Shown: one piece after another, positions 27,601 to 52,175 of the stretch
Layout of the letters: the number at the start of each line of letters is the position of its first letter
Position numbering within the stretch: the first letter of the stretch is position 1
From: Rebecca billardiae RCC1528
Taxonomy: Eukaryota; Protista; Haptophyta
DNA: 64,000 nucleotides
Assembly (NCBI GenBank): GCA_965240325.2
Contig: OZ251236.1
Span: forward strand, 744,001-808,000
Direction: 5' to 3'
Translations under genes and position numbers: made by a program
The notes under the pieces: generated by a model
Database searches by the model: none
Told to the model about the DNA's origin: nothing
Seen by the model: the letters and a program-made list of their open reading frames with translations, nothing else

Positions 27601-30600
27601 CCGCCGCCCAGCCCACCTCCCAACCCGCCACCCAGCCCGCCGCCGAGCCCGCCGCCGCCAAGCCCACCACCATCGCCACCGCCCGCACCGCCGCCGAGCC
27701 CGCCGCCGCAACCGCCGCCGTCACCACCGCCGTCTCCACCACCATCGCCACCGCCGAGCCCGCCGTCGAGCCCGCCGCCGAGCCCGCCGCCGCCGAGCCC
27801 GCCACCTTCGCCACCGCCCTCACCGCCGCCGAGCCCGCCGCCATCACCGCCGCCGAGCCCACCACCATCGCCACCGCCGAGCCCGCCGCCCCCTGCGCCA
27901 CCACCAAGCCCGCCGCCGAGCCCGCCGCCGAGCCCGCCGCCACCGAGCCCGCCACCATCACCACCACCGTTGCCTCCGCCGAGCCCGCCACCGTCATCGC
28001 CGCCCAGGCCACCACCAAGCCCTCCGCCGTCACCGCCGCCATCACCACCACCGCCCTTGCCGCCACCGAGCCCGCCACCAAGCCCCCCGCCGTCACCGCC
28101 GCCGTCACCACCACCGCCCTCGCCGCCACCGAGCCCACCGCCGTCCCCGCCGCCGTCGCCACCGCCGTCCCCGCCACCGCCCTTGCCGCCACCGAGCCCG
28201 CCACCAAGCCCCCCGCCGTCACCGCCGCCGTCACCACCACCGCCCTCGCCGCCGCCGAGCCCACCGCCGTCCCCGCCGCCGTCGCCACCGCCGTCCCCGC
28301 CACCGCCCTTGCGGCCACCGAGCCCGCCACCGAGCCCCCCGCCGTCACCGCCGCCGTCACCACCACCGCCCTCGCCGCCACCGAGCCCACCGCCGTCCCC
28401 GCCGCCGTCGCCACCGCCGTCACCGCCACCGCCCTCGCCGCCGCCGAGCCCGCCGCCCAGTCCACCGCCGAGCCCGCCACCGAGCCCACCGCCGCCAAGC
28501 CCACCACCGTCACCGCCACCATCGCCTCCGCCCAGGCCGCCGCCGTCTCCGCCGCCAAGCCCACCACCAAGCCCTCCGCCCTCGCCACCGCCCTCACCAC
28601 CACCACCCTCGCCGCCGCCGAACCCACCACCCAGCCCACCGCCGAGCCCGCCGCCGAGCCCGCCACCGCCAAGCCCGCCTCCGTCGCCACCGCCCTCGCC
28701 GCCTCCCAGTCCACCGCCATCACCGCCACCAAGCCCACCGCCGTCCCCTCCACCATCACCACCGCCGTCTCCACCGCCACCTTCGCCGCCGCCCAGTCCA
28801 CCGCCGAGCCCGCCACCGAGCCCACCGCCGCCGAGCCCACCACCGTCACCGCCACCATCGCCTCCGCCCAGGCCGCCGCCGTCTCCGCCGCCAAGCCCAC
28901 CACCAAGCCCTCCGCCCTCGCCACCGCCCTCGCCACCACCACCATCGCCGCCGCCGAGCCCACCACCCAGCCCGCCACCGAGTCCACCGCCGAGCCCGCC
29001 ACCGCCGAGCCCACCACCGTCGCCACCGCCCGCACCGCCGCCGAGCCCGCCGCCGCAACCGCCTCCAAGCCCGCCACCAAGCCCTCCGCCCTCGCCACCG
29101 CCATCGCCACCACCGCCCTCGCCGCCGCCGAGCCCACCGCCGTCCCCGCCGCCGTCGCCACCGCCGTCCCCGCCACCGCCCTTGCCGCCACCGAGCCCGC
29201 CACCGAGCCCCCCGCCGTCACCGCCGCCGTCACCACCACCGCCCTCGCCGCCGCCGAGCCCACCGCCGTCCCCGCCGCCGTCGCCACCGCCGTCCCCGCC
29301 ACCGCCCTTGCGGCCACCGAGCCCGCCACCGAGCCCCCCGCCGTCACCGCCGCCGTCACCACCACCGCCCTCGCCGCCACCGAGCCCACCGCCGTCCCCG
29401 CCGCCGTCGCCACCGCCGTCACCGCCACCGCCCTCGCCGCCGCCGAGCCCGCCGCCCAGTCCACCGCCGAGCCCGCCACCGAGCCCACCGCCGCCGAGCC
29501 CACCACCGTCACCGCCACCATCGCCTCCGCCCAGGCCGCCGCCGTCTCCGCCGCCAAGCCCACCACCAAGCCCTCCGCCCTCGCCACCGCCCTCACCACC
29601 ACCACCCTCGCCGCCGCCGAACCCACCACCCAGCCCACCGCCGAGCCCGCCGCCGAGCCCGCCACCGCCAAGCCCGCCTCCGTCGCCACCGCCCTCGCCG
29701 CCTCCCAGTCCACCGCCATCACCGCCACCAAGCCCACCGCCGTCCCCTCCACCATCACCACCGCCGTCTCCGCCGCCACCTTCGCCGCCGCCCAGTCCAC
29801 CGCCGAGCCCGCCACCGAGCCCGCCACTGCCGAGCCCACCACCGTCGCCACCGCCCGCACCGCCGCCGAGCCCGCCGCCGCAACCGCCTCCAAGCCCACC
29901 ACCAAGCCCTCCGCCCTCGCCACCGCCCTCGCCACCACCACCCTCGCCGCCGCCGAGCCCACCACCCAGCCCGCCACCGAGTCCACCGCCGAGCCCGCCA
30001 CCGCCGAGCCCACCTCCATCGCCACCGCCCGCACCGCCGCCGAGCCCGCCGCCGCAACGGCCTCCAAGCCCGCCACCAAGCCCTCCGCCCTCGCCACCGC
30101 CATCGCCACCACCGCCCTCGCCGCCGCCGAGCCCGCCGCCCAGCCCTCCGCCGAGCCCGCCGCCGAGCCCACCGCCTCCGAGCCCACCACCATCGCCACC
30201 GCCCTCGCCACCGCCCTTGCCGCCACCGGCACCGCCGCCGAGCCCTCCGCCGAGCCCGCCGCCATCGCCACCGCCGAGCCCGCCGCCCCCACGCCCACCG
30301 CCCAGCCCACCGCCGAGCCCGCCACCGAGCCTGCCGCCCAGCCCGCCGCCCAGCCCGCCGCCCTCATTGCCACCGCACCCACCGCCATCACCGCCACCGA
30401 CGCCTCCACCGGCGCCACCGCCCTCTCCGCCGCCGTCGCCTCCGCCGCCACCGCCACCGCCGAGTCCACCTCCCAGCCCGCCGCCCAGCCCGCCGCCGAG
30501 CCCGCCGCCGCCAAGCCCGCCCCCTTTGCCACCTCCCTCACCGCCGCCGAGCCCGCCGCCGCAACCGCCACCGTCCCCACCACCGTCCCCACCACCTTCG

Positions 30601-33600
30601 CCACCGCCGTCCCCGCCGCCACCTTCGCTGCCGCCGAGCCCGCCGCCAAGCCCGCCGCCGAGCCCGCCGCCGAGCCCGCCGCCGCCGAGCCCACCACCGG
30701 CGCCACCACCATCGCCTCCGCCGAGCCCGCCACCAGCACCGCCGCCGATCCCACCTCCGAGCCCGCCACCAAGCCCACCGCCGTCACCGCCACCGTTGCC
30801 ACCCCCAACCCCGCCGCCCTCGCCTCCGCCGAGCCCCCGGCCACCCTTGCCACCGCCAAGTCCACCGCCGAGTCCACCACCGAGCCGGCCGCCGAGCCCA
30901 CCGCCGTTTCCGCCACCATCGCCACCGCCGTCACCTCCACCAAGCCCGCCACCGAGCCCGCCCCCTTCACAACCGCCGTTGCCTCCACCAAGCCCGCCGC
31001 CGCCAAGCCCACCGCCGAGCCCACCGCCCAGCCCGCCTCCACACCCGCCGCCATCGCCTCCGCCATCACCCCCTCCGAGCCAGCCACCCTCACCGCCACC
31101 GAGTCCGCCGCCGCCCTTGCCGCCACCAAGCCCACCACCGAGCTCGCCGCCGAGCCCACCACCGAGCCCGCCACCGAGCCCACCACCCTCGCCACCGCCC
31201 GGCCCGCCGCCCAGCCCGCCGCCGAGCCCGCCGCCCAGCCCGCCTCCACGCCCGCCACCGTTGCCGCCGCCCTCGCCACCGCCACACCCGCCGCCGCCGC
31301 AACCGCCGCCGTCGCCACCACCGTCCCCACCGCCATCGCCGCCGCCTTCGCCGCCGCCGAGCCCGCCGCCGAGCCCGCCGCCGCTGCTACCGCCGAGCTC
31401 ACCACCACCACTACCGCCGCCGAGCCCGCCGCCGGTCTCGCCGCCCATGCCGCCGCCGAGCCCACCGCCCAGCCCTCCGCCGCGCCCACCCCCTTCGCCG
31501 CCACCGAGCCCGCCACCGCCGTTGCCACCGCCGAGCCCACCGCCGAGCCCACCGCCGCTTCCGCCGCCGAGCCCGCCACCCAGCCCGCCGCCCAGCCCGC
31601 CGCCCAGCCCGCCGCCGCCATTGTCACCGCCCAGCCCTCCTCCAAGCCCGCCGCCGAGCCCGCCGCCCTCGGCGCCACCTGGGCCGCCACCCAGCCCGCC
31701 GCCTTTCCCACCGCCGTCGCCGCCACCACCGCGCCCCCCGCCGTCGCCGCCGCCGTCACAGCCACCAAGCCCGCCGCCATCGCCACCGCCGGCCGCACCG
31801 CCCACGCCACCGCCTCAGCCGCCGCCGAGCCCACCACCATCGCCGCCACCATCGCCGCCACCATCGCCGCCACCGTTGCCGCCGCCGAGCCCGCCTCCGC
31901 CGTCGCCACCGCCGTCACCTCCACCATCGTCGCCGCCAGCTCTGCCACCGCGCCGGCCGCCGCCGTCGTCGCCACCGCGCCCGCCGCCAAGCCCGCCGCC
32001 CACACCACCGCCACAGCCGCCACCGCCCTCGCCGCCGCCAAGTCTGCCGCCCTCGCCGCCGCCCGGCCTACCACCCAGCCCGCCGCCCTCGCCGCCGCCC
32101 GGCACACCGCCGTCCCCGCCCCCGAGCCACCCTCCGCGGTCACCGCCACGCCCGCCACCGCCATCGCCCCCACCGAGCCCGCCACCTGCCTCACCGCCGC
32201 GTCCACCGCCGAGCCCACCGCCGAGCCCACCGCCATTCTCGCCACCAGCCATGCCGCCCTCGCAGCCGCCCAGCCCGCCGCCGAGCCCGCCACCGTCATC
32301 ACCGCCAAGCCTGCCGCCGAGCCGGCCGCCGGCCACTCCGCCACCGAGTCCACCGCCGATGCGGCCACCCGGCCCGCCCCCATCGGTCCCTCCGCTGCCA
32401 CCACCGCCTCCGCGTGTGCAGCCGTTCCCGCCGCCGTCGCCACCGGCACCGCCGCCATCGCCGCCGCCCTCACCGCCGCCCGCGCCACCGCCAAGCCCGC
32501 CGCTGAGCCCGCCGCCCACACAACCACCGCCCAGCGTGCCACCGCCCTCGCCGCCACCGAGCCCGCCACCGTCGCCGCCTCCGACGCCGCCGGCGTCGGT
32601 ACCGCCGCGCGCGCCTCCGCGCGCACCGCCACCATCGGCGCCGCCAAGCCTCCCGCCGCCACAGCCGCCGCTGGCGCCCCCGAGCGGGCCGCCGCCGAGC
32701 CCATCGCTCCAGCCGCCTCCGCCCTCGCCGCCCCTCGTCGCGTCAGTGACGGCCGAGCTGAGCGTCAGCACCGAGCCCGCCGCACTGAGCGGGGCGGCGC
32801 AGACAGCCGTTGAGTTGAGCGTCGCCCACCTCGTCGGCTCCGACCCGTCGGATGTCGAGATGACGGCGGTGCTGGCGGCGAGCGCGCTCGCGCACGTGCG
32901 CGTGCGTGCAGACGACGCAGCGCACGCTGCACAGGTTCAGGCGGCGCTTGACGCGCCTGGCGCCGCGGCGGCGCTGACGGAGCACCTCGCAGCGGAGCCA
33001 GGCGGTGCCGGCTTCGTCGTCGAGTCGGTGAGTAATGTGCAAGTACACGCGCCGCACGTGGCGCCGAGTGCTCCGCCCGCGGCGCCGCCGTCACCACCGC
33101 CCGCCATGCCGCCGTCGCCACTGCCCACGCCGCCGCCGTCGCTACCGCCCAGTCGGCCGCCGCCACCGCCGCCGCCGCCGTCACAGCCTCCACCCTCGCC
33201 TCCCTCGCCGCCGCCCTCCCCGCCGCCCTCGCCGCTGCCACCGCCGCCGAAGCCGTCACAGCCTCCACCCTCGCCTCCCTCGCCGCCGCCCTCCCCGCCG
33301 CCCTCGCCGCTGCCACCGCCGCCGAAGCCGTCACAGCCTCCACCCTCGCCTCCCTCGCCGCCGCCCTCCCCGCTGCCACCGCCGCCGTCCCCGCCGCCTT
33401 CCAGCCCACCTGCGCCGCCACAGCCGCCTCGCGTCGAGCCGTGGCCGCCGCCTTCGCCGCCGAGCGCGCCGCCGAGCTCGCCGCCCAGCTCGCCGCCGAG
33501 CGCGCCGCCGAGTGCGCCGCCGAGCTCGCCGCCGGGCGCGCCGCCGCCACCGCCCGCGCTCCGCGCCGCCCTCGCCACGGTCTCGCCCACCGCGCTGCCC

Positions 33601-36600
33601 CTCGCCGCCGAGCCGACCGCGGGCCGCGCCGACGCGCGTGCCAACGACACCGCGGCTGGGTTTGTGCTGGCGGGCGTTGGCTTCGACGCTCGGCGCGGCG
33701 GCGCGCTCTGCGCGTTCACGCGCGCGGGCGAGCTCGCGCCGAGGGCGACGGTGACGGCGACCGTCGTCAGCGAGACCGAGGCACGCTGCGCCGCGCCCAC
33801 CGCCGCCGACGCGCGCAACGCGAGCCTCGACGCGGGCGCGTACACTCTCTCCCTCCTCCTCGGCGGCGGCGCGCACGCGGTCCCTCGCCTCTTCGCAGCC
33901 GACGGCGCGGGCGCGGCCGTTCTGCTGTACAACGCGACGGCCGTGCTGGTGTCCGCGGTGCATCCGCGCGCCGGGCCGGTGGACGGCGGCACGGTGGTGA
34001 CGGTGGAGGGCGCCGGCTTCGCGCACGGCGGGCAGGGGCTCGGGCTGTGCTGCGTGCTGCGCGGCGCGCCTGGCTGCGCGGCGCCCGCGGCGCTTCTCTC
34101 GCCACACCCAGACTCGGGCGCGCAGCGCGTGCGCTGCGCGCTGCCGCCGGCGCCCGCGGGTGCGCCGGCCGTGCGCGAGATTGCAATCTCGCTCGGCGGC
34201 GGGGCGGCGGGCACCGTGAGCGCGCAGGGCGTGCGCTTCGCCTACTACGAGGAGCCCACGCTGCTCGCGCTGAGCCCGGCCAACGGCAGCGCCGCCGGCG
34301 GCACGCTCGTCACCCTCTCCGGCGCGGGCTTTGGCGCCGTCGGCTCACTGCTCGGAGGCAGCGATGGCGGCGGCGCGGCGGGCGGCCTGCCGTGGTGGGC
34401 GGGTCTCGTGCGCGTCGCCTTTGGCGAGCCGACGGCCGCGGCGGCGCCGAGCGCCGCGAGCGCGCACGCGCTGAGCGTGCTCACGCCGTACGGCGCTGCG
34501 GGCTCGACCGCGCAGGTGCGTGTGGCGCTGAACGGGCAGCAGTTTGCGCCGGCGGCCTCCGCGCATGCCGCGCCCGCATTCAGTTTCGGCCCGGAGCTCC
34601 GGCCGCCTCGGCTGGTCGAGGCGCGGCTGGGCACGGCGCTGACGACGCTCGAGCTGCGCTTCGACGCGCAGCCGACCGACCGCGGCGGGATGGGCCTCGG
34701 CACGCTCGGCCCGTGCGCCGCCGTCCTCGACGACGCGAGCGTCGCCCTGCTGCAGGCGGCCGCGTCCGCGCCCCCGCAAGAGGAGCAGCAGCAGCAGCAG
34801 CAGCACGAGGTGCCGCAGTGCTACTGGCCGGGCGAGACGCTGCTGGTCGCGCGGCTGGGCGCGCGCGCCGCGCTCCGGCCGGGGGACACCGTGCGCCTGC
34901 GCGAGGGCGCCGTCCGCCCCGCGGCGTGCGCCCAGCCTGGCGTGGCCACCGCCGAGCCGCGCTGCGCGGCCGACGCCGACGCCGCCGACGCCGGGAGTCT
35001 GTTTGCGAGCGGCGGCGCCCGCCTCGACCCAGACGCGCCGTGCGGCGCGGGCCGCGCGTGCGCGCCGCCGCTCGCGCGGCTGAGCGGGCCGTCGACGCTG
35101 CCGGCGTGCCTCGGGACCGAGAGCGGTGTGCCGTCGCACGGCTCAACACTCGCGCTCGACGGCACGGCCTCGGAGGGCGGCGGCGTCTTCGGCCTCCGCT
35201 TTGTCTGGGGCGTCGAGCCGAGCGCCTCCGCGTCCGCGGCCGCGCTGAGTGCCGCGTGGGCTGAGCGGCCGCCCTCGGCCGCGGCGGCCACCGTCGAGCT
35301 GGGCTCGGAGCTCGCAGAGGCGCACGCGCCCGGCGCGGCGTACACGTTTGCGCTGCGTGTGGGTGACGCGCTCGGTCAGCTCTCGGCACCCGCGCTCTGG
35401 CACGTGGAGCCGCCCGCAGGCGACGGCGCGCCCGCGCTGGCGCTCTCGGGCCCCGCCGAGCGCGGCGCGTACCCGGACCAGCCGCTGCTGCTGCAGGCGA
35501 CCGCCGAGGCCCCGGCGTGCGGCGGCGCGCGGCAGCGGCGCCGCCGCGCGTCCGAGGCCGCGGGCGGCGGCGCCGACGCCGACGCCGCCGCGATCGCCTA
35601 CGCGTGGCGCGTTGTCAGCGTGAGCGCACGCGACGGTCGAGCCGTCTCGGCCGCGTCCGTCGGCGCCCCCGCGCTCGACGGCACCGCGCCGGAATCGGCG
35701 CAGCCGGCGGGCGGCGCGCTGCGGCTGTCGCCGTGGGCGCTGCGCGCGGGCCACACTTACGAGCTCGAGGTGCTCGCGACGTCGGTGCGATCCAACGCGA
35801 CGAGCGTCGCGCGCGTGCGCGTGCGCGTGCTCCGACGGCCGCTGCGCGCGAGCATCGGCGGCGGCGACCGGGACGCGCCGGCCGCGCGCGCCCTCACCAT
35901 CGACGCCTCCGCCTCGGGCGACCCCAACCTGCCGCCGCCGGCGGGGGCGGGCGCAGCGGCGGCGGCGAGTGCCGCGCTCGCGGACGGCGCCGGTGCGCTG
36001 CGCTACGAGTGGAATCTAAGCTCGATCGACGGCTCGGACGCGCTGGGCGAGGCGGCGGCCGCGGCCGTGCGCAACGCGAGCGGCGTCGCGCTGCTGCGGC
36101 TGCCGCCCGCCGCGCTCGCGCCCGGGGCGTACCGCGTCACGCTGGCGGTGAGCAAGGCCGGGCACGCGAGCGCGCACGCGACCGTGACACTGCGCGTGCT
36201 CGCCGACGCGGGCGCGCCTTTGCTCACGCTCGCGCCACTCGCCCGCGCGGTGCAGCCCCACGCTTGGGTGGCGCCCGCGCGGCGGCTCGCGCTGAGCGCG
36301 ACGCTCGACGCCGAGAGCCGCGCGCAGCTCGAGGCGGGCGAGCGCGCGTTCGCGTACGCGTGGCGAGCGGCCGTGCTCAGCGGCGGCGGCGACGGCACCG
36401 AGGGTGTTGAGCTGGGCGGCGCCGGCGCGAGATACGGACGAGATCACGCGCTCGAGCTGGGAGATACGGACGAGATCACGACGACCGGCGCGGACCGTCC
36501 GACGCTCGCGCTGCGCTCGGGCGCGCTCGCTCCTGGCGCCACCTACCTCTTCGAGCTGACGGTGACCGACCTGAGCGCGGCGTCGCCGGGCGGCGGCGGC

Positions 36601-36786
36601 GTGGGGAGCACGGCGCTGCGCCCGGCGTCGTCGTCGCCCTCGCCCTCAGCCGTGCGTGCGACGGTGCTGGTGCGCGTCGGCCGGCCACCAATCCGCGGCA
36701 CGCTCGCGGTGCAGCCCGCCGCGGGCGTGGCCCTCAGCACCCCGTTCGCTCTGCGCGCGGCCGGCTGGGCGGCGGACCCGTCCTCC

Positions 36787-36818
<32 letters not shown>

Positions 36819-39800
36819 CGCGGAGGAGGCAAGCCTGCTCCCTCTGAGCTACGCGTTCGGCCACGCCGAGCGATCGCCTGGAGGCGTGGGCGCCGCGCCC
36901 GCCGTCGCCACTGCCGACGGGCAGCGGCAGGAGTCCCTTGGACCGGCTGGCGCGTCCGCCGCGCTGCTCGGCGTCGTGCTGCCGCCGGGCAACCGGACCG
37001 TGGTCGTGCGAGTCACCGACTCCCTCGGCGCGCACGCGAGCGCGAGCGCGGATGTCGAGGTGCGGCGAGCGTCGGCGGCCGACGCGGCGCTCGTCGCGGC
37101 GCTGAGCGCGGCGCGAGACGCGGCGGCGGCGGGCGCGGCGGGCGCGGCGCTTCGGCTCGTCCGGGCGCTCGCCGATTCGCTCGCGCCGACGACGCCGCCC
37201 AACGCCTCTGCCGCCGGCTCGACGCCGGCCGTCGCGCAGCTGCTGGAGATCACAGAGGCGATCACGGCGTCCGGCGCAGCGGACGTCTCGGCCGAGGCGC
37301 GCGCACACGCGGCGAGCACACTTGCAGCCGTGCTCGAGTCACCCGGCGCGGCCGAGCTGCCGGGCGCCGCGCGCGCGAGCGCGCTTCGCCAGGTGGCGAG
37401 TCTCGCGCTCGGCTCGGCGGAGAGTGGCCTCGAGCGCTCGACCGCGCTCGCGCTCGTCCGCTCCATCGACCGCGCCACCACCGCCACGCCCGCTGACGAC
37501 GGCGGCGCTGGGGCGGACGACGGGCCTGCGGAGGCGGAGGCAGGCGCGCAGGCGCTCGCGGCCGTGAGCGCGCTCGGGGCGGCCATGCTGGTTGGCGCTG
37601 CGATCGGCGAGCCCGCCTTCACGCTCGGCGGCGCGGCTGTGAACATCTCCGCCGCGCGCTTCGACCCGCTGGCGCTGCGCAACGCAACGGTACAGAACGC
37701 GGGCGGCGCGGGCTCGGTGTACGTCCCCGCCGCCGCGCTCGGCGCGCTCGAGGGCGGCGCGGCCGCGCTCTCGACAGGCGTCGACGTTGTGCTCTGGGCG
37801 CTCTCGCGCTCGCCGTACGTGGGCGCCGGCCTCGCGTCGGCGTCGGCGACGGCGCCGGGGGCCGAGCCGGCGGCGCCGAACGGCACGGCGGCGGTGGCGG
37901 CCGTGCGCACAGCGACGTTCTCTGTGGCGCTCTTCCCGCCGCGAGCCGCGGCGGGCGCGCTCGTCGAGCCCATAGCCGTGACGGGCGTCGAGCCACCGCT
38001 GCTCCTCGCGCTGCCCCCGGGCGGCGGCGGCGGTGGGAGCGGCGCGGACGGCGCGGGGGCGGGCGGCGGCGGCGGCGGCGCTCCGCTGTGTCACTTCTGG
38101 GACGAGGCGCTGCGCGCGTGGAGTGACGAGGGCTGCGTGACGGTGATGGGCGGGTCGACTTCCGCCGCGCTCGGCGAGGGCGGAGGCGCCGACGCGTCGG
38201 GCGCTGCGCTGCTGTGCGCGTGCTCGCACCTCACGGACTTCGCCGGGATTGTCGTGCCGGCGTCTGCGGACGAGGCGTCCGAGCAGGCCTCCGCCGTCGG
38301 CGTCAACACGTTCAGCACGCAGGACACGGCGGACGCGCTCTCTGCCGCGCCGGTGCGAACGTCGGAGTTTGGGGACAGCGGCGCGCCCACGATGCGCGCC
38401 ATCATCATCGCCCTCTCCGCCGCGAACGTGCTCGCGCTCGCACTCGCGCACGCGGCGGACGTGCGCTCGGCGAGGCGGCACCGCGCGTGGCGCGCCGCGG
38501 AGCTGCAGCGCCTCAGCAGCGGCGCGGGCGCGGACGGCTCGCGCAGGGGCAGTGCGGATGCGTCCGCGCGCGCCTCGGCCGCGCGGCAGGCCGCGGTCGC
38601 GCGCCAGTCTGTGCGCCGCCGCGGCTCGCTCTCCTCGTTCTCGGCGACGTCGGGCGGGTCCTACCACTGCAGCGGCGGCGGGGCGGGCGGCGGCGCGGAC
38701 GGCTTGACGACCGTGCAGCGCGTGCGCGCCAAGAAGCAAGAGGCGGCTGAGGCCGCGGCGGCTGAGGCCGCGGCGGCTGAGTCCGCGGCCGAGCGTGGCC
38801 TCCCAGCCGAGTGCGGAGGGAGTGACGGCCTCGGCTTGGCGCCGCCGACGCCGTGCTCGGCCGCTCTGGCGTACGAGCCGGGCCATTGCGACCTGAACCT
38901 CGCCACCATGGAGGGCATGACGACCGTGCAGCGCGTCCGAGCGCGCAAGCAAGCGGAGGCCGCGTATGCCGCCGCGGCCGCGTCCGCCGCGTCGGCCGCC
39001 GCGAGCGGCGGCACGCTGATGCCGCCGTCGGCGCCGCTGAGCCCTCCGCCGCCGTCGCCGCCACCGGCGCCGCCACCGCCACCGCCGCCGGGCGCGCCCG
39101 CCGGAGCGGCCGACCGCGTCCTCCCCGTCCGCCGCTCCCCGGCCAGCCTTGGCGAGCGCAGCGCCGCGCTCGGCGAGGGCGTGCGCGCTGTGGAGGAGGA
39201 GGAGGAGGAGGAGGACGATCAGAGCGACGCGGGCTATAGCTCCTTCTCGTTCCGCGCGCGCGTGCTCGCCACGGGCGCCTTCGAGGCCATCCGGGAGCAG
39301 CACGTCCTGACCTCCGCGCTCTCGCAGCCAGACCCGTCGGCCAGGCGCACCGAGGCGGTGCAGTCGCTGTTCTGCATGCTCGCTCTCGAGGTGTGCCTCG
39401 AAGCTTTGCTGTACGGCCAGCCAGGCGCGTCGCTCGGCCGCTCAGACCTCTCCAGGGCCGCCGAGTCCGGCGACGATTACCACAGCGACGACCAGGCCGT
39501 GGGCCTACTCACAATACTCCTCACCGCGCTGCTCGTCTCCGCCGTCTGCGGCCCGGCGCTCGGGCTGTTCAGAGTCGTGTGGCGGTACGGCCGCGGACCG
39601 GACCGGCCCGCGCCGACGGAGGTGCTGTACACCGTTCTCAAGCGCACACTGAGCAGCTCGAGCCGCTCGGCCTCGACGCTTGCGTCGCGCGTCACCTCGC
39701 GCAAGTCGTCCGTGCTCTCCGATAGCGTGCTGAGCAGCGCCGCGCTGCGCTTGGCCGTGCGCGGGCGCGCGGACTCGAGCGGCGGGCGCGCCGCCGACGC

Positions 39801-41985
39801 GGACGGCGCCGGCGCGGGCGCCAGCTCTCGCGTGCAGCCGGTGCGCTCGGTCGGCGGCGGCGCGTCCGCCGCGGCGGACCGGCCGGCCCTCAGCCGGCCG
39901 CGCAGCGCGGGCTCGAGAGGCGCGGGCATCGTCATTCCGCCCACGCCATCCACGCCGCACGGCACGGGCGCGCTGCACGCGCCGGCGCGCGAAGGGCTCG
40001 CGGCCAAGGCGTGCGCGCCCGCCGCCGCCGAGGCCGACGCGCGGCGCGGCGCGGTGAACGACGCGCTGGAAGGCTCGGCCGCGGCCGTCTTTGCCCGGCC
40101 CTCGTCGGCGAGCCTGCCCTCGTCCTCGCGGGCGTCGGCCGCGCGCCCCAGGTCCGCCGCACACCCGCTCTCCCGAGCTTCCACCGCCTCCCTGGCGGAG
40201 CGACCGTCGGCATCGGCGGGTCCGCCGCGCCGACCCGTCTCGGCTCGGCCGTGCACGTCGCCCGCCTCGACGGCCGGCTGGTCGTCCACGCTGCCGCTGT
40301 GCTCCACCGAGTCCTCGAGCCTCGCGTCGCGCTCGGCCACGCCCGAGGACTCGCTCGACGCGGCCGGCGCCGCGCACGCCGCTGCGCCCGCCGGCTCGGC
40401 GCCAGCGCCCGCCTCTGACGAGGCTGTGCCCGGGGGCGCCATCGACGGCGCGCCCGCCGCGCTCGATGGCGGGGCGCCCGCAGCCGCCGACGGTCGGCGC
40501 TCTCGCCCGCTCGCACCGCCGAGCCCCCCCAGGGGCCGGGTGCACTACGCGCCCGCGGCCAAGGTGCTGGGCGCGCGCGCGCGCACGCTCGCGCCCGCCA
40601 CGCCGCACGCCAGCCCGCTGCGCTCCGCACTCCGCCCGGCGGCGCTCGGCGTGATCGCGTCGCCGCCAGCAAGTCCCGCGCGCTCGGCGCTGCGCAAGCC
40701 CGGGGCGCTCGGCGGCGCGGCGCCGGGCTCGCCTGCGACCTCGAGCCGCTCGGTGCAGCTCCACGCGCCGGCGGAGGGCGCGCCTGCCATCACGCCTGTC
40801 GTCGTCGTCACGCCACCGGCCAGCCCGGCGCAGCCGCCACGCGAGTCGTCCGCTACCGCCTCCTCCTCCGCGCTGGCGCAGGCGGCGGCGGCGGAGGCGC
40901 CGTGTCTGTTTGAGGGATTCACAGACTCGGAGCTGGCAACCATCAGGCAGGTGGTCTCGGACGAAGAGGCGGTGGCGATGCGCTGGGCGTTCAATCGGCA
41001 CGCGCGGGCGCGCGTGCGCACCGTTGGGTTTGTCGCGCGGCTGCTCTCACCCGCCGGACGCCTCAGCCGACTGAGCCGCCTGTCGGGCGCCGACAGCCTG
41101 GGCGGCTCGCGCGGCGGGACGCCGAGCCGGCCGAGCCGCGTCGGCGGGCGGCTCACGGGCAGCGAGTCGGCCGGCTCGCGCGCCACCTCGCCGACGCCGA
41201 GCAACCGGTTCAGCTCGCCGGCGCCCGCCGACCGCTCCTACTCCTATGGCTCGCCGACGGCCGGAAATCGCTTCGCCGCCGCGTGCGCCAACTCGGCCGC
41301 GCCCGGCGGCAACCGGTTCAACTCGCCGGCGCGCTCGGCCTCGGGCGGGAGCGGCCGCTTCAGCGCGCGCGCGGCGCCGAGCCCCACGCGCTCCGCGCCC
41401 ATCGCGCCCGCGGGACTGCGCGGCCCCGCGCGTGGCTCGGCCGCGCCGTCGCGCAGCTTTGGCGGCGCGCGCCGGCTGCGGCCAGACGGGCTGCGCGCGC
41501 TGATGGCCGAGCACGCCGAGCCCGTGACGCCGCGCGTCTCGCGGCTGCTCGTGCGCCAGCTGGACTCGGATCTCGATGGTGCCGTCGCGCTGCGCGAGCT
41601 GCTCGCGTGGTACGCGCGGCAGAAGCAAGCGGCGCAGCTGCGCGCGCGGCTAGGCTGCGCGCTGCTCGCGCGCTGCGCGCCGCCGCCGCGCGTGCGCGCG
41701 CCGCTCGCGTGGCTGCTGATGCTGAGCACCTACGTCGGCCTCTGCATCTTCGCGCTCACGCTCGGCCAGGCGCTCGGCCAGGCGCGCGTAGACGCGATGC
41801 TCCGCTCGTGGCTCATCGCGCTCACGCACACCCTCGCGGTGCAGGAGCCCATCATGCTCGGCGCCGGCCACGTCGCGCGCGCTGGCGGCAAGGCGTGCGC
41901 CGGCCTGCTCGCGCTCGGAGCGGGCGAGGCGATCATGAGCGCGCTGGACGCGGTCGAGGGCGCGATGCGCTTCTTCTTCCAGTAG
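21655..41985 (+). CDS. Giant polycystin-1/REJ-GPS-like adhesion receptor (LRR, SPPP stalk, IPT, REJ, GPS, 5 TM, EF-hand). Exons 21655-22076, 22269-22340, 22523-22594, 22764-41985, ~6595 aa
   Basis: Three phase-2 GT-AG introns splice LRR units in frame (total 19788 nt). Plant-type LRRs; IPT motifs (PRAGPVDGGTVVTVEGAGF); REJ motifs (LTIDASASGDPN, PPIRGTLAVQPAAGVALSTPF); GPS CHFWD...WSDEGC...CACSHLTDFA; PKD1-like TM motifs (SWLIALTHTLAVQEP); EF loop DSDLDGAVALRE. Start codon uncertain. Confidence 0.9.
24271..32733 (+). repeat. ~8.5-kb (SPPP/SPPPP)n coding array, ~2820 aa, with ~1-kb higher-order repeats
   Basis: The PPSSPPRPPPSPP marker lies at ~25447, 26431, 27406 and 27991; the PPLRPPS marker at 28311 and 29310 (999 nt apart). 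Confidence 0.97.
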
Positions 41986-43107: not shown

Positions 43108-45615
43108 TCAGATATGCCAGCTCTCCGCCGCGAGCGCCTCTCGGATGGCGGCTCGCGTGCGCGCGTTGAACGCCTCGATGCCGTCGTCGTCGCCGCGCTC
43201 GGCGCCCGCGCCGCGCGGGTCGGCCGCCGACCCGCCCCTGCGGCGCGAGCGGTGGCGCGGCGAGCCGTACCGCGCGCGCACCTCGTGCAGGATCACGTCC
43301 CGGTCCGCGTCGCGCGGCACGCCCGCCGTGCGCACGTCGTACTGCCCGAGCTGGTCGAGCACGCGCGGCCGGTTCGCGGCGAGTGCCGAGATGAGCCGCG
43401 CGCGCTCGGCGGGCGCGATCGCGACCGAGAGCCCCGCGGGGCCGAGCGGCCCGCCGCCGTCGACGGTGCGCAGCAGCGGCAGGTCGAGCGCGTGCATCAG
43501 CTCCCACAGGCACCACGCGCGCGTGAGCGCCACGGGCTTGTCCCAGGGGTCGAGGACGAGGACGACCCGCCCGACCCGGCGCTCGAGCGCGCCCAGATAG
43601 ATCAGGTCGGCCTCCTGCGCAAACTGGCGGAGGCAGACGAGGTCGAGCCAGTAGAAGATGGAGGAGGTGTCGAGGTCGTGCAGCGCCGCGTGCGCGTGCA
43701 GCGCCTCGACCATCTTGCGGAAGTCGCACGCGTGCGCGTGCGAGACGAAGTGCGTCGCGAGCCCGACCGCCTGCGCGCCCGACTCGCTCAGCGTGCCGAC
43801 GTGCTGCTCGGCAAGCGAGCTGCGCAGCCGCTGCCGGAAGAGGTGCTCCCAGAGGCGCTCGGAGACCTCGTACGCGGTCTCGCCCGGCCGGACGCGGAGC
43901 ATGCGGCACAGGTCGTCGAGGAAGTCCGGGCTCACGCCGAGCAGCAGGTGCGGCGGCAGCGGGCCCATCGCGAGCCGGCGCAGCTGCCACGGAATCGGAA
44001 GCCGCAACGGCCGCTCCCAGATCGAGGGCAGTACCCGCTTCGAGCCCGGCCGCGCCTCCGCGCCCGCCGCGGCGCAGCCAGCGCACGGGTGGCTGAGCCC
44101 GAGCGCGCGGAGCAGCGCGCGCGCACACACGCCGAGCAGCGCGTGCAGCGGGCCCGGCGCGGACGCGCGCTCGCCGCCGGCGCGCAGCGTCGCGCCCGGC
44201 GGCGCGCGCAGCGCCGCGCAGTGAGCGTAGGATCGGCAGTTGAGAGCGCTCAGCATGCACAGCCCGCCGCCTAGCCGGCCGCGCGGGCGGAGGGCCCACC
44301 ACGGCGCGCTGAGCGCGCACGCGAGGGCGAGCGCGCCGCTCGCCAGCGCGACGCGCAGGTGCGCGCGCACGCGCGAGAGCACCGGCCCCGCGATCGCGCG
44401 GTGCCGGCGCGCGCGCTGCACGCCCGCGGTCGCGCGCGCGCTGAACGCGAGCGCGGCGCTCGGCAGCACTACCCAGCTCAGGCCGAGCCTGCCGAGCTGC
44501 GCGCGCGCGCCGGGCGCGGCGGTGGCCGAGGCGAGGGCGGCGGAGAGCTCGAACGCGACCGCCGCGCCGCTCGCGCCGAGCACGCCACGCCGCGCGCGGA
44601 GCGAGAGCGCGAGGGACGGGAGGCCGCCGGCGGCGGCCGCGTCGAAAAAGGCGACGGCGAAGGTGCATGCAGCGACCGCGCCGCAGCCCGCCGGCATGGC
44701 GACGAGCGTGAGCGCGAGCGGCGACGGGAGGAGCGGCTGCGCGCCGCCGCCGTCGAGGAGCGCGTGCAGCAGCCGCTCCACGCACACCACGCCCTCCAGC
44801 GCCAGCGTGAGCCCGGGCGCGCCCAGCACCCAGGCCCAGCGCACAGACCACGGAGCGGCCGCGCCGCCGCCGGCGGCCCCGTGCGCGGCCGGCGCGGCCG
44901 CCGCCGCCTGATGGCTCATCGCGGCGCGTTGGAAGGCGAGGATGCGCGAGACGAGCAGCTCGAGCGTGAGCAGCGCCTGCAGCGCGACGAGCACGCGCGC
45001 GCACATCCACGCGCCACCGTCCCACGCCGCTGCCCACGCGCCGCCCACTCTCGCGGGCGCGAGCGCGGCGCGCACAGCCGCGCGGCTGCGGGCCAGCGCG
45101 TCGAGCAGGGGCGCGGCGTCGGCGGCGAAGAGGTCGACGGCGGGCGCGCGCGGGCGCAGAGAGCGCGCGTCGCCGCGCTCCCACGCGCGCGTCTGCCCGC
45201 CCGGCACGGGCTGCAGCGCGCGCGCGAGCGCCGCGCCGCCCGTTGGCACGTGCGCCCAGCCGGCCGCGCCGTGCGCCTCGATGGCGGCGCGCGCGAGCTG
45301 CTCGGCAGAGCACGCGCCGCGGGCGGGCGGCTCGGCGATGACAATGGCGCGTGCCAGCACGCGCGCGTCCGCGCCCACGTACCGCGGCGGGCACCCCGCC
45401 GACGCGTCCCAATCGGCGGCGGGGGCCCAGACGATTGGCGCGGCCGCCACGCGCTCCGCGCCCGCCGCAAACGCGTAGCTCGGCGCGGCGAGCCGCAGGC
45501 CGACGAGCTCGGCCGGGCCGGCGATGATGGTCAGCTCAGCGCGTACCAGACCGGCAGCGGCCGCGGCGAAGACGAGCGCCTCGCGGCGCGCCCGCCGCCC
45601 GCCGCGGACGCGCAT
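43108..45615 (-). CDS. Signal peptide, PA-like ectodomain, 7TM, C-terminal HET/TIR-like domain; ~835 aa
   Basis: Single ORF, ATG at 45615. Seven hydrophobic segments at ~45009-44210. C-terminal motifs ATHFVSHAH, FYWLDLVCLRQ and LVLDPWDKPVALTRAWCLWEL. Confidence 0.85.
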   Translation of the reverse strand: MRVRGGRRARREALVFAAAAAGLVRAELTIIAGPAELVGLRLAAPSYAFAAGAERVAAAPIVWAPAADWDASAGCPPRYVGADARVLARAIVIAEPPARGACSAEQLARAAIEAHGAAGWAHVPTGGAALARALQPVPGGQTRAWERGDARSLRPRAPAVDLFAADAAPLLDALARSRAAVRAALAPARVGGAWAAAWDGGAWMCARVLVALQALLTLELLVSRILAFQRAAMSHQAAAAAPAAHGAAGGGAAAPWSVRWAWVLGAPGLTLALEGVVCVERLLHALLDGGGAQPLLPSPLALTLVAMPAGCGAVAACTFAVAFFDAAAAGGLPSLALSLRARRGVLGASGAAVAFELSAALASATAAPGARAQLGRLGLSWVVLPSAALAFSARATAGVQRARRHRAIAGPVLSRVRAHLRVALASGALALACALSAPWWALRPRGRLGGGLCMLSALNCRSYAHCAALRAPPGATLRAGGERASAPGPLHALLGVCARALLRALGLSHPCAGCAAAGAEARPGSKRVLPSIWERPLRLPIPWQLRRLAMGPLPPHLLLGVSPDFLDDLCRMLRVRPGETAYEVSERLWEHLFRQRLRSSLAEQHVGTLSESGAQAVGLATHFVSHAHACDFRKMVEALHAHAALHDLDTSSIFYWLDLVCLRQFAQEADLIYLGALERRVGRVVLVLDPWDKPVALTRAWCLWELMHALDLPLLRTVDGGGPLGPAGLSVAIAPAERARLISALAANRPRVLDQLGQYDVRTAGVPRDADRDVILHEVRARYGSPRHRSRRRGGSAADPRGAGAERGDDDGIEAFNARTRAAIREALAAESWHI

Positions 45616-50384: not shown

Positions 50385-52175
50385 ATGACGAATCCTCCCC
50401 GGCGCGGGTGGGTCCTCGCCCTGGCGGCGTGCGCGCAGCTCGGTGCGCGCGCCGACCTCGTCGTCCTGCGGTCGCCAGACGCCCCTGAGCTCGTCAACTA
50501 CTCCGCGCCGTTCTGCCGCCACTTCTACCCCAACTCGGACCGCACTGACTACAGCTTTGACGCGGACGTCGTCGCGATCAAGACCTCAGACATCGATTGG
50601 ACCGGGTGCAAGCTGCGCTACACGGGCGACGAGGACCTGGAGGGCAAGGTCGCCATCTGGGTCCAGCCCCTCTCGTACAAGTGCGGAACCACGACAATCC
50701 TCAGGTATGGGCGCACGTGGGGCCTCGCCGGCCAGCTGACGTACTACCCGGACGTCATCAACACGGGGCTCCGGCACATCTCCGTCGGCTACTGGCGCAA
50801 CGTGTGGCGCACAAGGGCTCCGCGCGCCGACGACCCCTACGTCGGGCCCAGCGGCGAGTTCACGGCGCGCGCCTCCATCCCGATTGTCGAGGCGCTGCTC
50901 GCCGGCCAGAAGATCAGGGCGCGGATGGCGCGCACGGAGGTGCTGTGGGAGGCGTTTGAGCACGGCGCGCTCTTTGCGCTCTGGCGGGCGTTCATCATCC
51001 TCCTCGCCGCCTTCTGCATCGAGATGGCCGCGACGCGGCTCTACGCCTTCATCAAGCAGGACGGCGGCAAGGTCCACCTCACCGTGCCCAACCTCGTGAT
51101 GATGGGCAGCATCGTCGCCAACACGGTGCGCATCCTGTACATCGGCCTGGGCCCGATCTTCACGACGCCCACGCTCTCGGTGCCGGCGAGCAACGCCATG
51201 ATGGTGCTGTCGGCATCGACGGAGTACTGGACGTCGGCGGTCTTCGTGAGCTACGTCTGGCTCGGCCTCGCCAAGGGCGGCCTCGCTCAGCCCAACCTGC
51301 AGCGCGTCACAGCGCGCACTCTCCTCGCGATCGTGACGTGCGCCTTCGTCGTGGACATTCTGGGTGCGACGATGTACATGTTCGTCTACGGCCTGGTGCG
51401 GGCGCTGCGCGGCGCGGGTGGGCGGTGTGCACGCCGAGCCCGCGTCGGCATCCCACGCGCGCCCTCCCGCGCGCGTGCTCACTCGCCCCCTGCCCCCGCA
51501 CCCCTCGTCGCGCCCTGCGCACCCCGCGCACCCGCACCGAGCAGTATCAGGTGCGTGTGCGGGCGGTTCGCAACGCGGATGGGCGCAGGGCACGCCGGGG
51601 CGCCGAGCGCCATCGTCATCCCGCGCGCGCCCGGCCGCGCGCGCGCGCTCACTCGGCCCCTGCCCTCACGCCGTCGCACCCGCACCTCGCGGCAGGCCAT
51701 GACTGCCAACTCGTGCGTCTTCCCCGGCCTCATTGCGATCTTCTGCATCCGCGCAGACATGAAGCTGCAGAAGCTCGCCGGGCACCTTCCATCCGTGCCG
51801 CTGATGAAGCGCATCCGCTTCAAGCTGCGCGCGTCCATCCTCCTCTCGCTCGCCTTCGTGCCGGTGCCGCCCCTCACGTTCATCCTCATGTTCAACCCGT
51901 ACACGGTGGTCCTCATCTTCACGTACGGCATGTGTGTGCTCACGGCCACGTCGCTCGTGCAGATGACCACGTTCTGGCCGACAGCGACCAAGGTGCCGCG
52001 CGGGCCGCTCCTCTACTGCCTGGAGACGCTGGCTGGTCGCCGCATCTTCACCTCACTCATCGGCCCCAACTCGGCGCTGCCTGTCAACGAGATCGAGCCA
52101 GCCACGGAGGAGCAGAAGGCAGCTGAGGAGGCGTCCCGCGTGCCGGCGCAATTCATCGAGATCACGCGCCTCTGA
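50385..52175 (+). CDS. Signal peptide, PA-like ectodomain, 7TM receptor (paralog of 43108-45615, no HET domain). Exons 50385-51395, probable 51545-51550, 51696-52175; ~498 aa
   Basis: Signal GWVLALAACAQLGARA; PA pattern GC...DLEGKVAI...C...GLAG...IVEALLAGQKIRARM; seven TM segments once the non-coding-looking 51396-51695 (GT...AG) is removed. Confidence 0.87.
   Translation: MTNPPRRGWVLALAACAQLGARADLVVLRSPDAPELVNYSAPFCRHFYPNSDRTDYSFDADVVAIKTSDIDWTGCKLRYTGDEDLEGKVAIWVQPLSYKCGTTTILRYGRTWGLAGQLTYYPDVINTGLRHISVGYWRNVWRTRAPRADDPYVGPSGEFTARASIPIVEALLAGQKIRARMARTEVLWEAFEHGALFALWRAFIILLAAFCIEMAATRLYAFIKQDGGKVHLTVPNLVMMGSIVANTVRILYIGLGPIFTTPTLSVPASNAMMVLSASTEYWTSAVFVSYVWLGLAKGGLAQPNLQRVTARTLLAIVTCAFVVDILGATMYMFVYGLVRALRGAGGRCARRARVGIPRAPSRARAHSPPAPAPLVAPCAPRAPAPSSIRCVCGRFATRMGAGHAGAPSAIVIPRAPGRARALTRPLPSRRRTRTSRQAMTANSCVFPGLIAIFCIRADMKLQKLAGHLPSVPLMKRIRFKLRASILLSLAFVPVPPLTFILMFNPYTVVLIFTYGMCVLTATSLVQMTTFWPTATKVPRGPLLYCLETLAGRRIFTSLIGPNSALPVNEIEPATEEQKAAEEASRVPAQFIEITRL

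Follow-up and report, generated by a model that had tools for sequence, protein, structure and literature searches.

A predicted receptor of the haptophyte Rebecca billardiae joining a PA-like ectodomain, a seven-helix core and an extended TIR/HET-like domain in a single chain

Analysis of a 64,000-nucleotide stretch of DNA from the haptophyte Rebecca billardiae RCC1528 (contig OZ251236.1 of assembly GCA_965240325.2, positions 744,001 to 808,000 of the forward strand; below called the window, with positions counted from its first letter) has identified a minus-strand gene whose 835-residue product, P0001, has an unusual architecture. According to structure models, a signal peptide, a PA-like ectodomain, a core with the fold of G-protein-coupled receptors (GPCRs), a linker of about 40 residues and a cytosolic TIR/HET-like domain of about 290 residues follow one another on a single chain. 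The gene is a member of a diversified family of such fused receptors. A preliminary description of the gene, made from the sequence alone, had proposed a seven-transmembrane-helix (7TM) receptor with a HET/TIR-like effector; its observation is confirmed here and its interpretation is partly supported. The gene and the parts of its product, with the evidence for each, are as follows.

43108..45615, minus strand: complete single-exon coding sequence of P0001 (list of open reading frames, translation, GC content at third codon positions, identical public protein)
45538..45615, minus strand: predicted signal peptide, residues 1-26 (basic n-region, hydrophobic core, helix 7-21 in the model)
45046..45537, minus strand: PA-like alpha/beta ectodomain, residues 27 to ~190 (AlphaFold2, Foldseek)
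44206..45024, minus strand: predicted seven-helix GPCR-fold membrane core, residues 198-470 (AlphaFold2 model)
43981..44205, minus strand: juxtamembrane helix (residues 489-504) and disordered linker (residues ~505-545) (model, GC content at third codon positions)
43111..43980, minus strand: extended TIR/HET-like domain, residues 546-835 (homologues, AlphaFold2, VIA-align)

The open reading frame (ORF) spans 45705 to 43108 on the minus strand, with the first ATG at 45615 and the stop codon TGA at 43108-43110, and its 835 codons run without interruption or intron. The window is eukaryotic sequence with a GC content of 0.61-0.83 per 2 kb, and long ORFs in other frames, including one of 776 codons, overlap the gene; ORF length alone is therefore no proof of coding. 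The GC content by codon position is 0.81/0.61/0.95 for the whole coding sequence, 0.86/0.69/0.92 for residues 1-200, 0.80/0.64/0.95 for the 7TM region, 0.81/0.69/0.93 for the linker and 0.79/0.50/0.98 for the C-terminal domain, and the flanking regions have a GC content of 0.66 and 0.53. Since the GC content at third codon positions (GC3) of the linker is 0.93, this stretch is still coding. The direct fusion of the two halves, as claimed in the preliminary description, is thus borne out by one 835-codon ORF with a GC3 of about 95% throughout, linker included. An identical 835-residue protein was found on a public contig of 3213 nt (L001), which is collinear with positions 45875-42680 of the window. 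GC3, in-frame homology of both halves and the identical public protein show that the frame of P0001 is the coding frame from end to end. Apart from a ~14-nt indel in a short repeated stretch 3’ of the gene (window ~42715; L001 3161-3176), the two sequences share 99.97% identity across 3161 nt. When the protein and the profiles of its N-part and C-domain served as queries in word-indexed homologue searches, the matches were essentially self or few, the prefilter being swamped by Ala-rich low-complexity words; the Ala content of P0001 is 23%.

A full-length AlphaFold2 model built on an alignment of 42 sequences (predicted local distance difference test score, pLDDT, 83.1; predicted template-modelling score, pTM, 0.78) contains, in this order, a leader helix (residues 7-21), an alpha/beta domain, seven long helices (201-468), a further helix (489-504), a disordered stretch (509-542) and the C-terminal domain. 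Residues 1-26 have the features of a signal peptide, with VRA preceding the mature end, as read directly from the sequence. A hydrophobic N-terminal leader is common to 20 full-length relatives in the family alignment and to a neighbouring paralogue described below. The ectodomain, modelled mostly with pLDDT above 85, carries two family-conserved cysteines, in GCPPRY (45379-45396) and GACSAEQ (45298-45318). In structural comparison its model has the PA fold: Foldseek recovered the ectodomains of ZNRF3/RNF43, VSR1 and the PA domains of a subtilase and of M28 proteins with probabilities of about 1.0 and template-modelling (TM) scores by target of 0.45-0.61, at E values of only 0.02-0.1, and the nearest structural neighbours of this part in the Atlas bear PF02225. 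The Pfam PA profile (PF02225) itself matches neither P0001 nor ten full-length relatives.

The membrane core is modelled as a seven-helix bundle of GPCR topology, with the N-terminus outside and the C-terminus inside. Plain hydropathy is weak for helices four to seven because the protein is so rich in Ala, and the count of seven comes from the AlphaFold2 model. No Pfam 7tm family matches P0001 or the ten full-length relatives, and the core is thus assigned to no named GPCR family. Lysine and arginine residues are distributed unequally, 16 in the inside loops and the tail vs 5 in the outside loops. This distribution, together with the signal peptide and the seven helices, predicts a cytosolic C-terminus and therefore places the C-terminal domain in the cytosol, the topology that had been expected. 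The three N-terminal elements of the preliminary description, signal peptide, PA-like ectodomain and seven helices, are hence recovered by the n-region and hydrophobic core, by the Foldseek matches to PA folds and by the model, respectively. Between the core and the C-terminal domain, pLDDT falls to 34-55 over residues 509-542, and the length and sequence of this linker of about 40 residues vary among relatives in the family alignment. The language-model and structure neighbours of the N-terminal part are unnamed PA-7TM clusters from Endomyxa and Zoopagomycota, and the PA-7TM module is itself an unnamed protist family. The last membrane helix (P0001 ~455-475) has a conserved N-x2-S-Y followed by F-x-P-x-G...GPL in family alignment A2; the position of N-x2-S-Y recalls the NPxxY/helix-8 region of class A GPCRs, and no DRY-like motif is seen after the third helix in the same alignment.

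With the C-terminal domain (residues 540-835, 296 amino acids) as query, 1.84 billion representatives were searched exhaustively by HMMER. At E<=1e-3 there were 1791 matching proteins, of which 186 reached E<=1e-10 and nine E<=1e-30. Judging from these sequence matches, the domain is a large family uncaptured by Pfam. Its AlphaFold2 model, built on 41 aligned sequences (pLDDT 90.2, pTM 0.88), consists of an N-terminal helical lobe, an alpha/beta core (residues ~617-745) and a C-terminal helical lobe. The motifs of the domain are located as follows.

43930-43941, minus strand: LGVS, residues 559-562 (translation)
43732-43767, minus strand: VGLATHFVSHAH, residues 617-628 (translation)
43732..43749, minus strand: block 1, FVSHAH, residues 623-628, predicted strand beta-A (alignment, model)
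43624..43653, minus strand: block 2, YWLDLVCLRQ, residues 655-664, predicted strand beta-B and beyond (alignment, model)
43498..43548, minus strand: block 3, PWDKPVALTRAWCLWEL, residues 690-706, after strand beta-C (683-687) and into helix 700-710 (alignment, model)
43501-43503, minus strand: candidate catalytic Glu705 of WCLWE (alignment)

All four motif strings of the preliminary description are present in the translation where it had placed them; they did not arise by chance, as their residues are among the most conserved of the family. Conservation was counted over the 165 instances of the domain that the 150 best representatives contain. The most conserved positions are F623, S625, H626, A627, W656, D658, Q664, G682, P690, W691, P694, R699, W701, C702 and E705, and P0001 retains every one of them. 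In block 1, F is found in 131 instances, S in 134, H in 126 and A in 120, while the last position is W in 83, Q in 31 and H in 23. The counts in block 2 are 143 for W656, 138 for D658 and 121 for Q664, and those in block 3 are 148 for P690, 144 for W691, 153 for P694, 155 for R699, 153 for W701 and 143 for C702. Position 705 is E in 144 of the 147 instances without a gap; in the secondary structure of the model, Glu705 sits in helix 700-710, directly after strand beta-C (683-687).

Two kinships had been claimed for this domain, to HET and to TIR, and each was supported in part. Three blocks, FVSHA[WQH], W-x-D-x2-C-x2-Q and R-x-W-C-L-x-E, occur in this order and are highly conserved. No Pfam family other than HET (PF06985) matches the members repeatedly, and HET does so always below threshold (7 of 41, best E value 0.0026); the best relative, P0026, reached 16.8 bits against a gathering cut-off of 22.5 bits. 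The sub-threshold alignments place residues 386-425 of P0026 on profile positions 25-63 (blocks 1-2) and residues 608-635 of P0008 on positions 45-75 (block 2), the matching stretches being the FVSHAQ and W-x-D-x2-C-x-R-Q blocks. P0001 and its last 280 residues match no Pfam family at E<=1. The HET-like motifs stand, as does the presence of the same domain at the N-terminus of protist TPR proteins, but the domain remains below the Pfam cut-off for HET.

The kinship to TIR was seen mainly in structure. In Foldseek searches of the C-domain against PDB and Swiss-Prot the matches were non-significant (E>0.03), with TIR domains at the head of both lists and their alignments all beginning at the FVSHAH strand. 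When the matches were re-scored with VIA-align, TIR domains ranked first in both searches, and in the Foldseek-seeded VIA search they filled all of the first 34 rows. The best structural matches include the scaffold TIRs MyD88, MAL, TRIF and TRAM. The model has the flavodoxin-like alpha/beta core of the TIR fold, with middling fold scores. At the profile level the kinship falls short of threshold: TIR_2 matched one of the 41 members (E 0.048) and P0015 (E 0.071), and the only TIR among solved structures matched by the family profile was PdTIR (3h16, E 0.89), with FISHAW and VWYDDF in register. The same PdTIR was a top HHpred match of the fungal HET domain in the study of Dyrka et al. (2014), in which homologues of HET were also reported from stramenopiles, haptophytes, choanoflagellates, green algae and bryophytes. 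The C-terminal domain may best be described as extended, HET-like and TIR-related; it falls short of formal membership in both Pfam families.

The fusion is not peculiar to P0001. Profile search found the same N-terminal PA-7TM module in 27 of the 150 best C-domain representatives. The fused relatives, among them P0004, P0008, P0013, P0019, P0023, P0024, P0029, P0038, P0041, P0054, P0062 and P0089, are 750-890 residues long, match the N-part at E 1e-13 to 1e-67 and have four to seven hydrophobic peaks. One of them lies on a contig with a GC content of 58%, therefore GC-driven extension of ORFs does not explain the fusion. In a maximum likelihood tree of 132 C-domains, made by a quick method with a midpoint root and leaving many forks open, the 23 fused rows are all found in a single subtree of 48 rows (support by the Shimodaira-Hasegawa-like approximate likelihood ratio test 93), whose remaining rows are short, probably fragmentary proteins; 30 of the 35 rows that have a long TPR-type extension at the C-terminus are in a separate 68-row subtree. 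This distribution fits one or a few fusion events, which would have been followed by diversification. P0024 (782 residues; L004, gene at 123-2471) is a second fused protein from the same sequencing run as P0001, to which it is about 30% identical; therefore the organism has several diverged fused paralogues. The gene-sized contigs of this run (2.7-3.2 kb) suggest a transcriptome and have no retained poly(A) tail.

The preliminary description had further supposed that FVSHAH, in place of the usual FVSHAW, may alter activity. In the fused PA-7TM subfamily position 628 is Q in 16 and H in nine proteins and never W, while W is found in most other members. FVSHAH is therefore normal for the subfamily of P0001, which rules out its interpretation as a degenerate active site.

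Nor did the domain prove to be confined to cytosolic sensors, as had been assumed. Besides the 27 PA-7TM fusions, it is found in other multi-pass proteins and in dinoflagellate proteins. The whole 280-residue fold was recovered by Foldseek (E 1e-12 to 1e-8, TM by query 0.52-0.70) in TPR proteins of choanoflagellates, oomycetes, chytrids and green algae, where it is N-terminal, and in dinoflagellate proteins annotated as EGF-like, Apple or ephrin-receptor-like, where it is C-terminal. TPR_10/TPR_12 repeats were confirmed in six long relatives. In P0108 (634 residues) and P0142 (605 residues), the domain stands behind a different membrane part of four to five helices, without the PA-7TM module, and the two proteins form a well-supported pair adjoining the receptor subtree. 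Here the domain has been tethered to the membrane a second time, independently. Such shuffling onto many sensor scaffolds suggests a signalling or effector module.

Bacteria, plants and animals all use TIR-type domains in immune and cell-death signalling, and fungal HET has long been suspected to be a relative of TIR. TIR NAD+ hydrolases (NADases) have a catalytic Glu at the start of helix alphaC and cleave the nicotinamide-ribose bond, and TIR enzymes are active upon self-association of their domains, while the PA domains of ZNRF3/RNF43 and VSR bind protein or peptide ligands. By analogy, we consider it moderately probable that P0001 senses a ligand, whereupon its C-terminal domains assemble and cleave NAD+ or another nucleotide via Glu705, leading to defence or death signalling. 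The ligand, probably a peptide or a protein as with other PA domains, would bind the ectodomain or the 7TM core and alter the conformation or the clustering of the receptor. The tethered C-domains would thus be brought together, as TIR domains require for activity, and the assembled domains would cleave the N-glycosidic bond of NAD+ or a related nucleotide through Glu705. The outcome would be the formation of signalling nucleotides or the depletion of NAD+, followed by a defence or cell-death response; overall, this would be the logic of Toll-like receptors on a 7TM scaffold. The NADase or cell-death function, the sensing of a ligand and the location of P0001 in the plasma membrane are inferred.

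Catalysis by Glu705 is plausible, as the residue is near-invariant and is predicted to lie in the helix after strand beta-C, as in TIR NADases. Several observations weigh against an enzymatic function. Many TIR domains are pure scaffolds. The putative equivalence of Glu705 and the catalytic Glu of TIR is based on the order of motifs and secondary structure elements. P0001 has no significant sequence match in Pfam or PDB, and PDB sequence searches with the single domain and with full-domain, core and block-3 profiles found nothing significant. The enzymatic step is the weakest link of the proposed mechanism because the biochemical activity of HET was still listed as not determined (‘ND’, for fungal HET) in a review of 2025.

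The main rival, which we consider unlikely, is that the C-terminal domain is a non-enzymatic homotypic adaptor, like the TIRs of Toll-like receptors and MyD88, and recruits soluble HET-like-TPR proteins that relay the signal. Homotypic partners do exist, since many soluble TPR proteins begin with this same domain. HET was originally proposed to act as an adaptor (Dyrka et al. 2014), and the four scaffold TIRs named above are among the best structural matches. However, Glu705 and R699, W701 and C702 are near-invariant in about 150 divergent representatives, a pattern that resembles an active site more than an interaction surface. Besides, the enzyme and adaptor roles are compatible, since TIR enzymes also need assembly.

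It is still less probable that P0001 resides in endomembranes as a 7TM protein for housekeeping or trafficking, with a C-terminal domain that is regulatory or acts on another substrate (a nucleoside or nucleotide, as in 2’-deoxyribosyltransferase/DNPH-type enzymes), unrelated to immunity or death. Its motif pattern is nearer to HET/TIR than to deoxyribosyltransferases. The lineage-specific expansion, the rapid divergence (paralogues of one organism being about 30% identical) and the shuffling of domain partners (TPR, EGF, Apple) seem typical of immune or recognition families. An artefact, that is, a chance long ORF in DNA of 78% GC, two merged neighbouring genes or a pseudogene, is highly improbable: very GC-rich DNA does yield long ORFs in several frames, such as the overlapping 776-codon one, but both halves have in-frame homology to real families (N-part E 1e-34, C-part 4e-40), GC3 periodicity is unbroken, every conserved residue is intact, the fusion recurs in 27 representatives, lower-GC contigs included, and several relatives lie on gene-sized contigs of 2.3-3.4 kb that resemble transcripts, a likeness drawn from their size, as none of them retains a poly(A) tail.

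Among known systems, the protist HET-like-TPR proteins (for example, the choanoflagellate ‘Mbre TPR repeat protein’) have the same 280-residue domain, complete with its two helical lobes (TM by query 0.56-0.70 in Foldseek, E 1e-12 to 1e-9). They differ in that their domain is N-terminal and soluble and has FVSHAW, whereas the receptor forms are a separate subtree with FVSHAQ/H. The fungal HET domain (PF06985; HET-E/D/R, TOL, HET-6, PIN-C) is likewise an end module on sensor proteins and has three blocks that appear to correspond in the same order, S-aromatic/His-x-W, W-x-D-x2-C-x2-Q and R-x-W-x3-E. However, the domain of P0001 has extra conserved helical lobes, including the LGVS..FL block, and is C-terminal to a 7TM receptor, whereas fungal HET is N-terminal to NACHT-WD40 or stands alone. 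According to reviews, fungal HET suffices for the induction of cell death. Compared with the TIR NAD+ hydrolases (SARM1, RUN1/RPP1/RPS4, AbTir, ThsB, SPARTA), the P0001 domain is about twice as large and has no significant match to any TIR profile or solved TIR. A precedent for an extended TIR-like domain that profiles fail to see is TeTIR of TEP1/NWD proteins (bioRxiv 10.64898/2026.09.21.753143), a domain of 200-350 residues that is invisible to standard TIR profiles, has a conserved Glu and a Glu-dependent NADase activity and causes cell death. However, TeTIR immediately precedes NACHT and bears an RWG loop, and we found no evidence of specific kinship between it and the P0001 family.

Toll-like and IL-1 receptors follow the same logic as P0001, in that a single chain carries an outside domain for binding, crosses the membrane and has a TIR-type domain in the cytosol. 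Toll-like receptors differ in being single-pass proteins with LRR or Ig ectodomains and scaffold TIRs, as opposed to the PA ectodomain and GPCR-fold 7TM core of P0001. The oomycete GPCR-bigrams combine a seven-helix receptor and a cytosolic effector on one chain. The same combination is described for the rhodopsin-guanylyl cyclase and 7TM-RGS proteins of protists and fungi, and none of these fusions is known to have an effector of the TIR/HET type. The PA-domain receptors ZNRF3/RNF43, the vacuolar sorting receptor and SPPL2 share the ectodomain fold with P0001; they are single-pass E3 ligases, sorting receptors and nine-helix proteases, respectively, and P0001 differs from them also in having no sequence-level PA match.

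No description of the PA-7TM-HET/TIR architecture was found in curated families or in the open-access full-text literature, nor in the latter any paper treating GPCR-bigrams together with TIR. The architecture is thus new, while the kinds of its components are known, and the domain family had been noted outside fungi already in 2014 (Dyrka et al.). The P0001 family has a TIR/HET effector wired straight to a GPCR-fold receptor, and its compact, intron-free and well-modelled HET-like domain is suited for a first NADase test of HET-type domains, for which a Glu-to-Ala exchange is the evident control. For algal biologists, the family provides candidate receptors for the recognition of viruses, bacteria or self/non-self in an ecologically important group. 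As a tentative and rather doubtful generalization, haptophyte-type algae may possess a whole class of G-protein-independent GPCR-fold receptors, each with its own NAD+-cleaving effector of the TIR/HET type, through which an outside ligand would directly trigger nucleotide-based immune or death signalling. If true, the Toll-like receptors would have a 7TM counterpart, and a HET-type domain would for the first time have an enzymatic activity assigned to it.

No viral relatives were found in searches with P0001 and P0004. A degenerate DNA pattern derived from block 3 had one viral match, at 12714-12761 of L006 (IMGVR_UViG_3300042323_000977), in a tailed-phage-like structural gene region. We regard it as a chance match, as it lies on the strand opposite to the only long ORF and about 0.4 chance matches are estimated.

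Two further genes of the window deserve mention. The first, 4.8 kb from the fused gene, is an unfused relative.

50385..52175, plus strand: divergently transcribed unfused PA-7TM paralogue (family profile matches at 50400-51398 and 51696-52037)

The first of these matches has an E value of 3e-94, with the stretch itself included in the profile, and the second, independent one has an E value of 2e-14; the N-part of P0004 matches the paralogue at E 1e-26. Its 7TM region is split by a non-coding intron region of about 300 nt (~51393-51695). A hidden exon encoding the C-domain was ruled out for the window by a search of all six frames with the C-domain profile, which gave a single match, at the fused gene.

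The second, at 22585-41985 on the plus strand, is a giant ORF of 6466 residues. It begins with LRR-like repeats; extensin-like repeats of the SPPP type occupy over 3000 residues, and Ig/PKD-like segments recur in a long region rich in Ala and Gly. Directly before hydrophobic segments it has the sequence CxCSHLTDF, which resembles the GPS/GAIN autoproteolysis motif. If this reading of the motif holds, the product would be a giant surface protein of the adhesion-GPCR or polycystin-like type.

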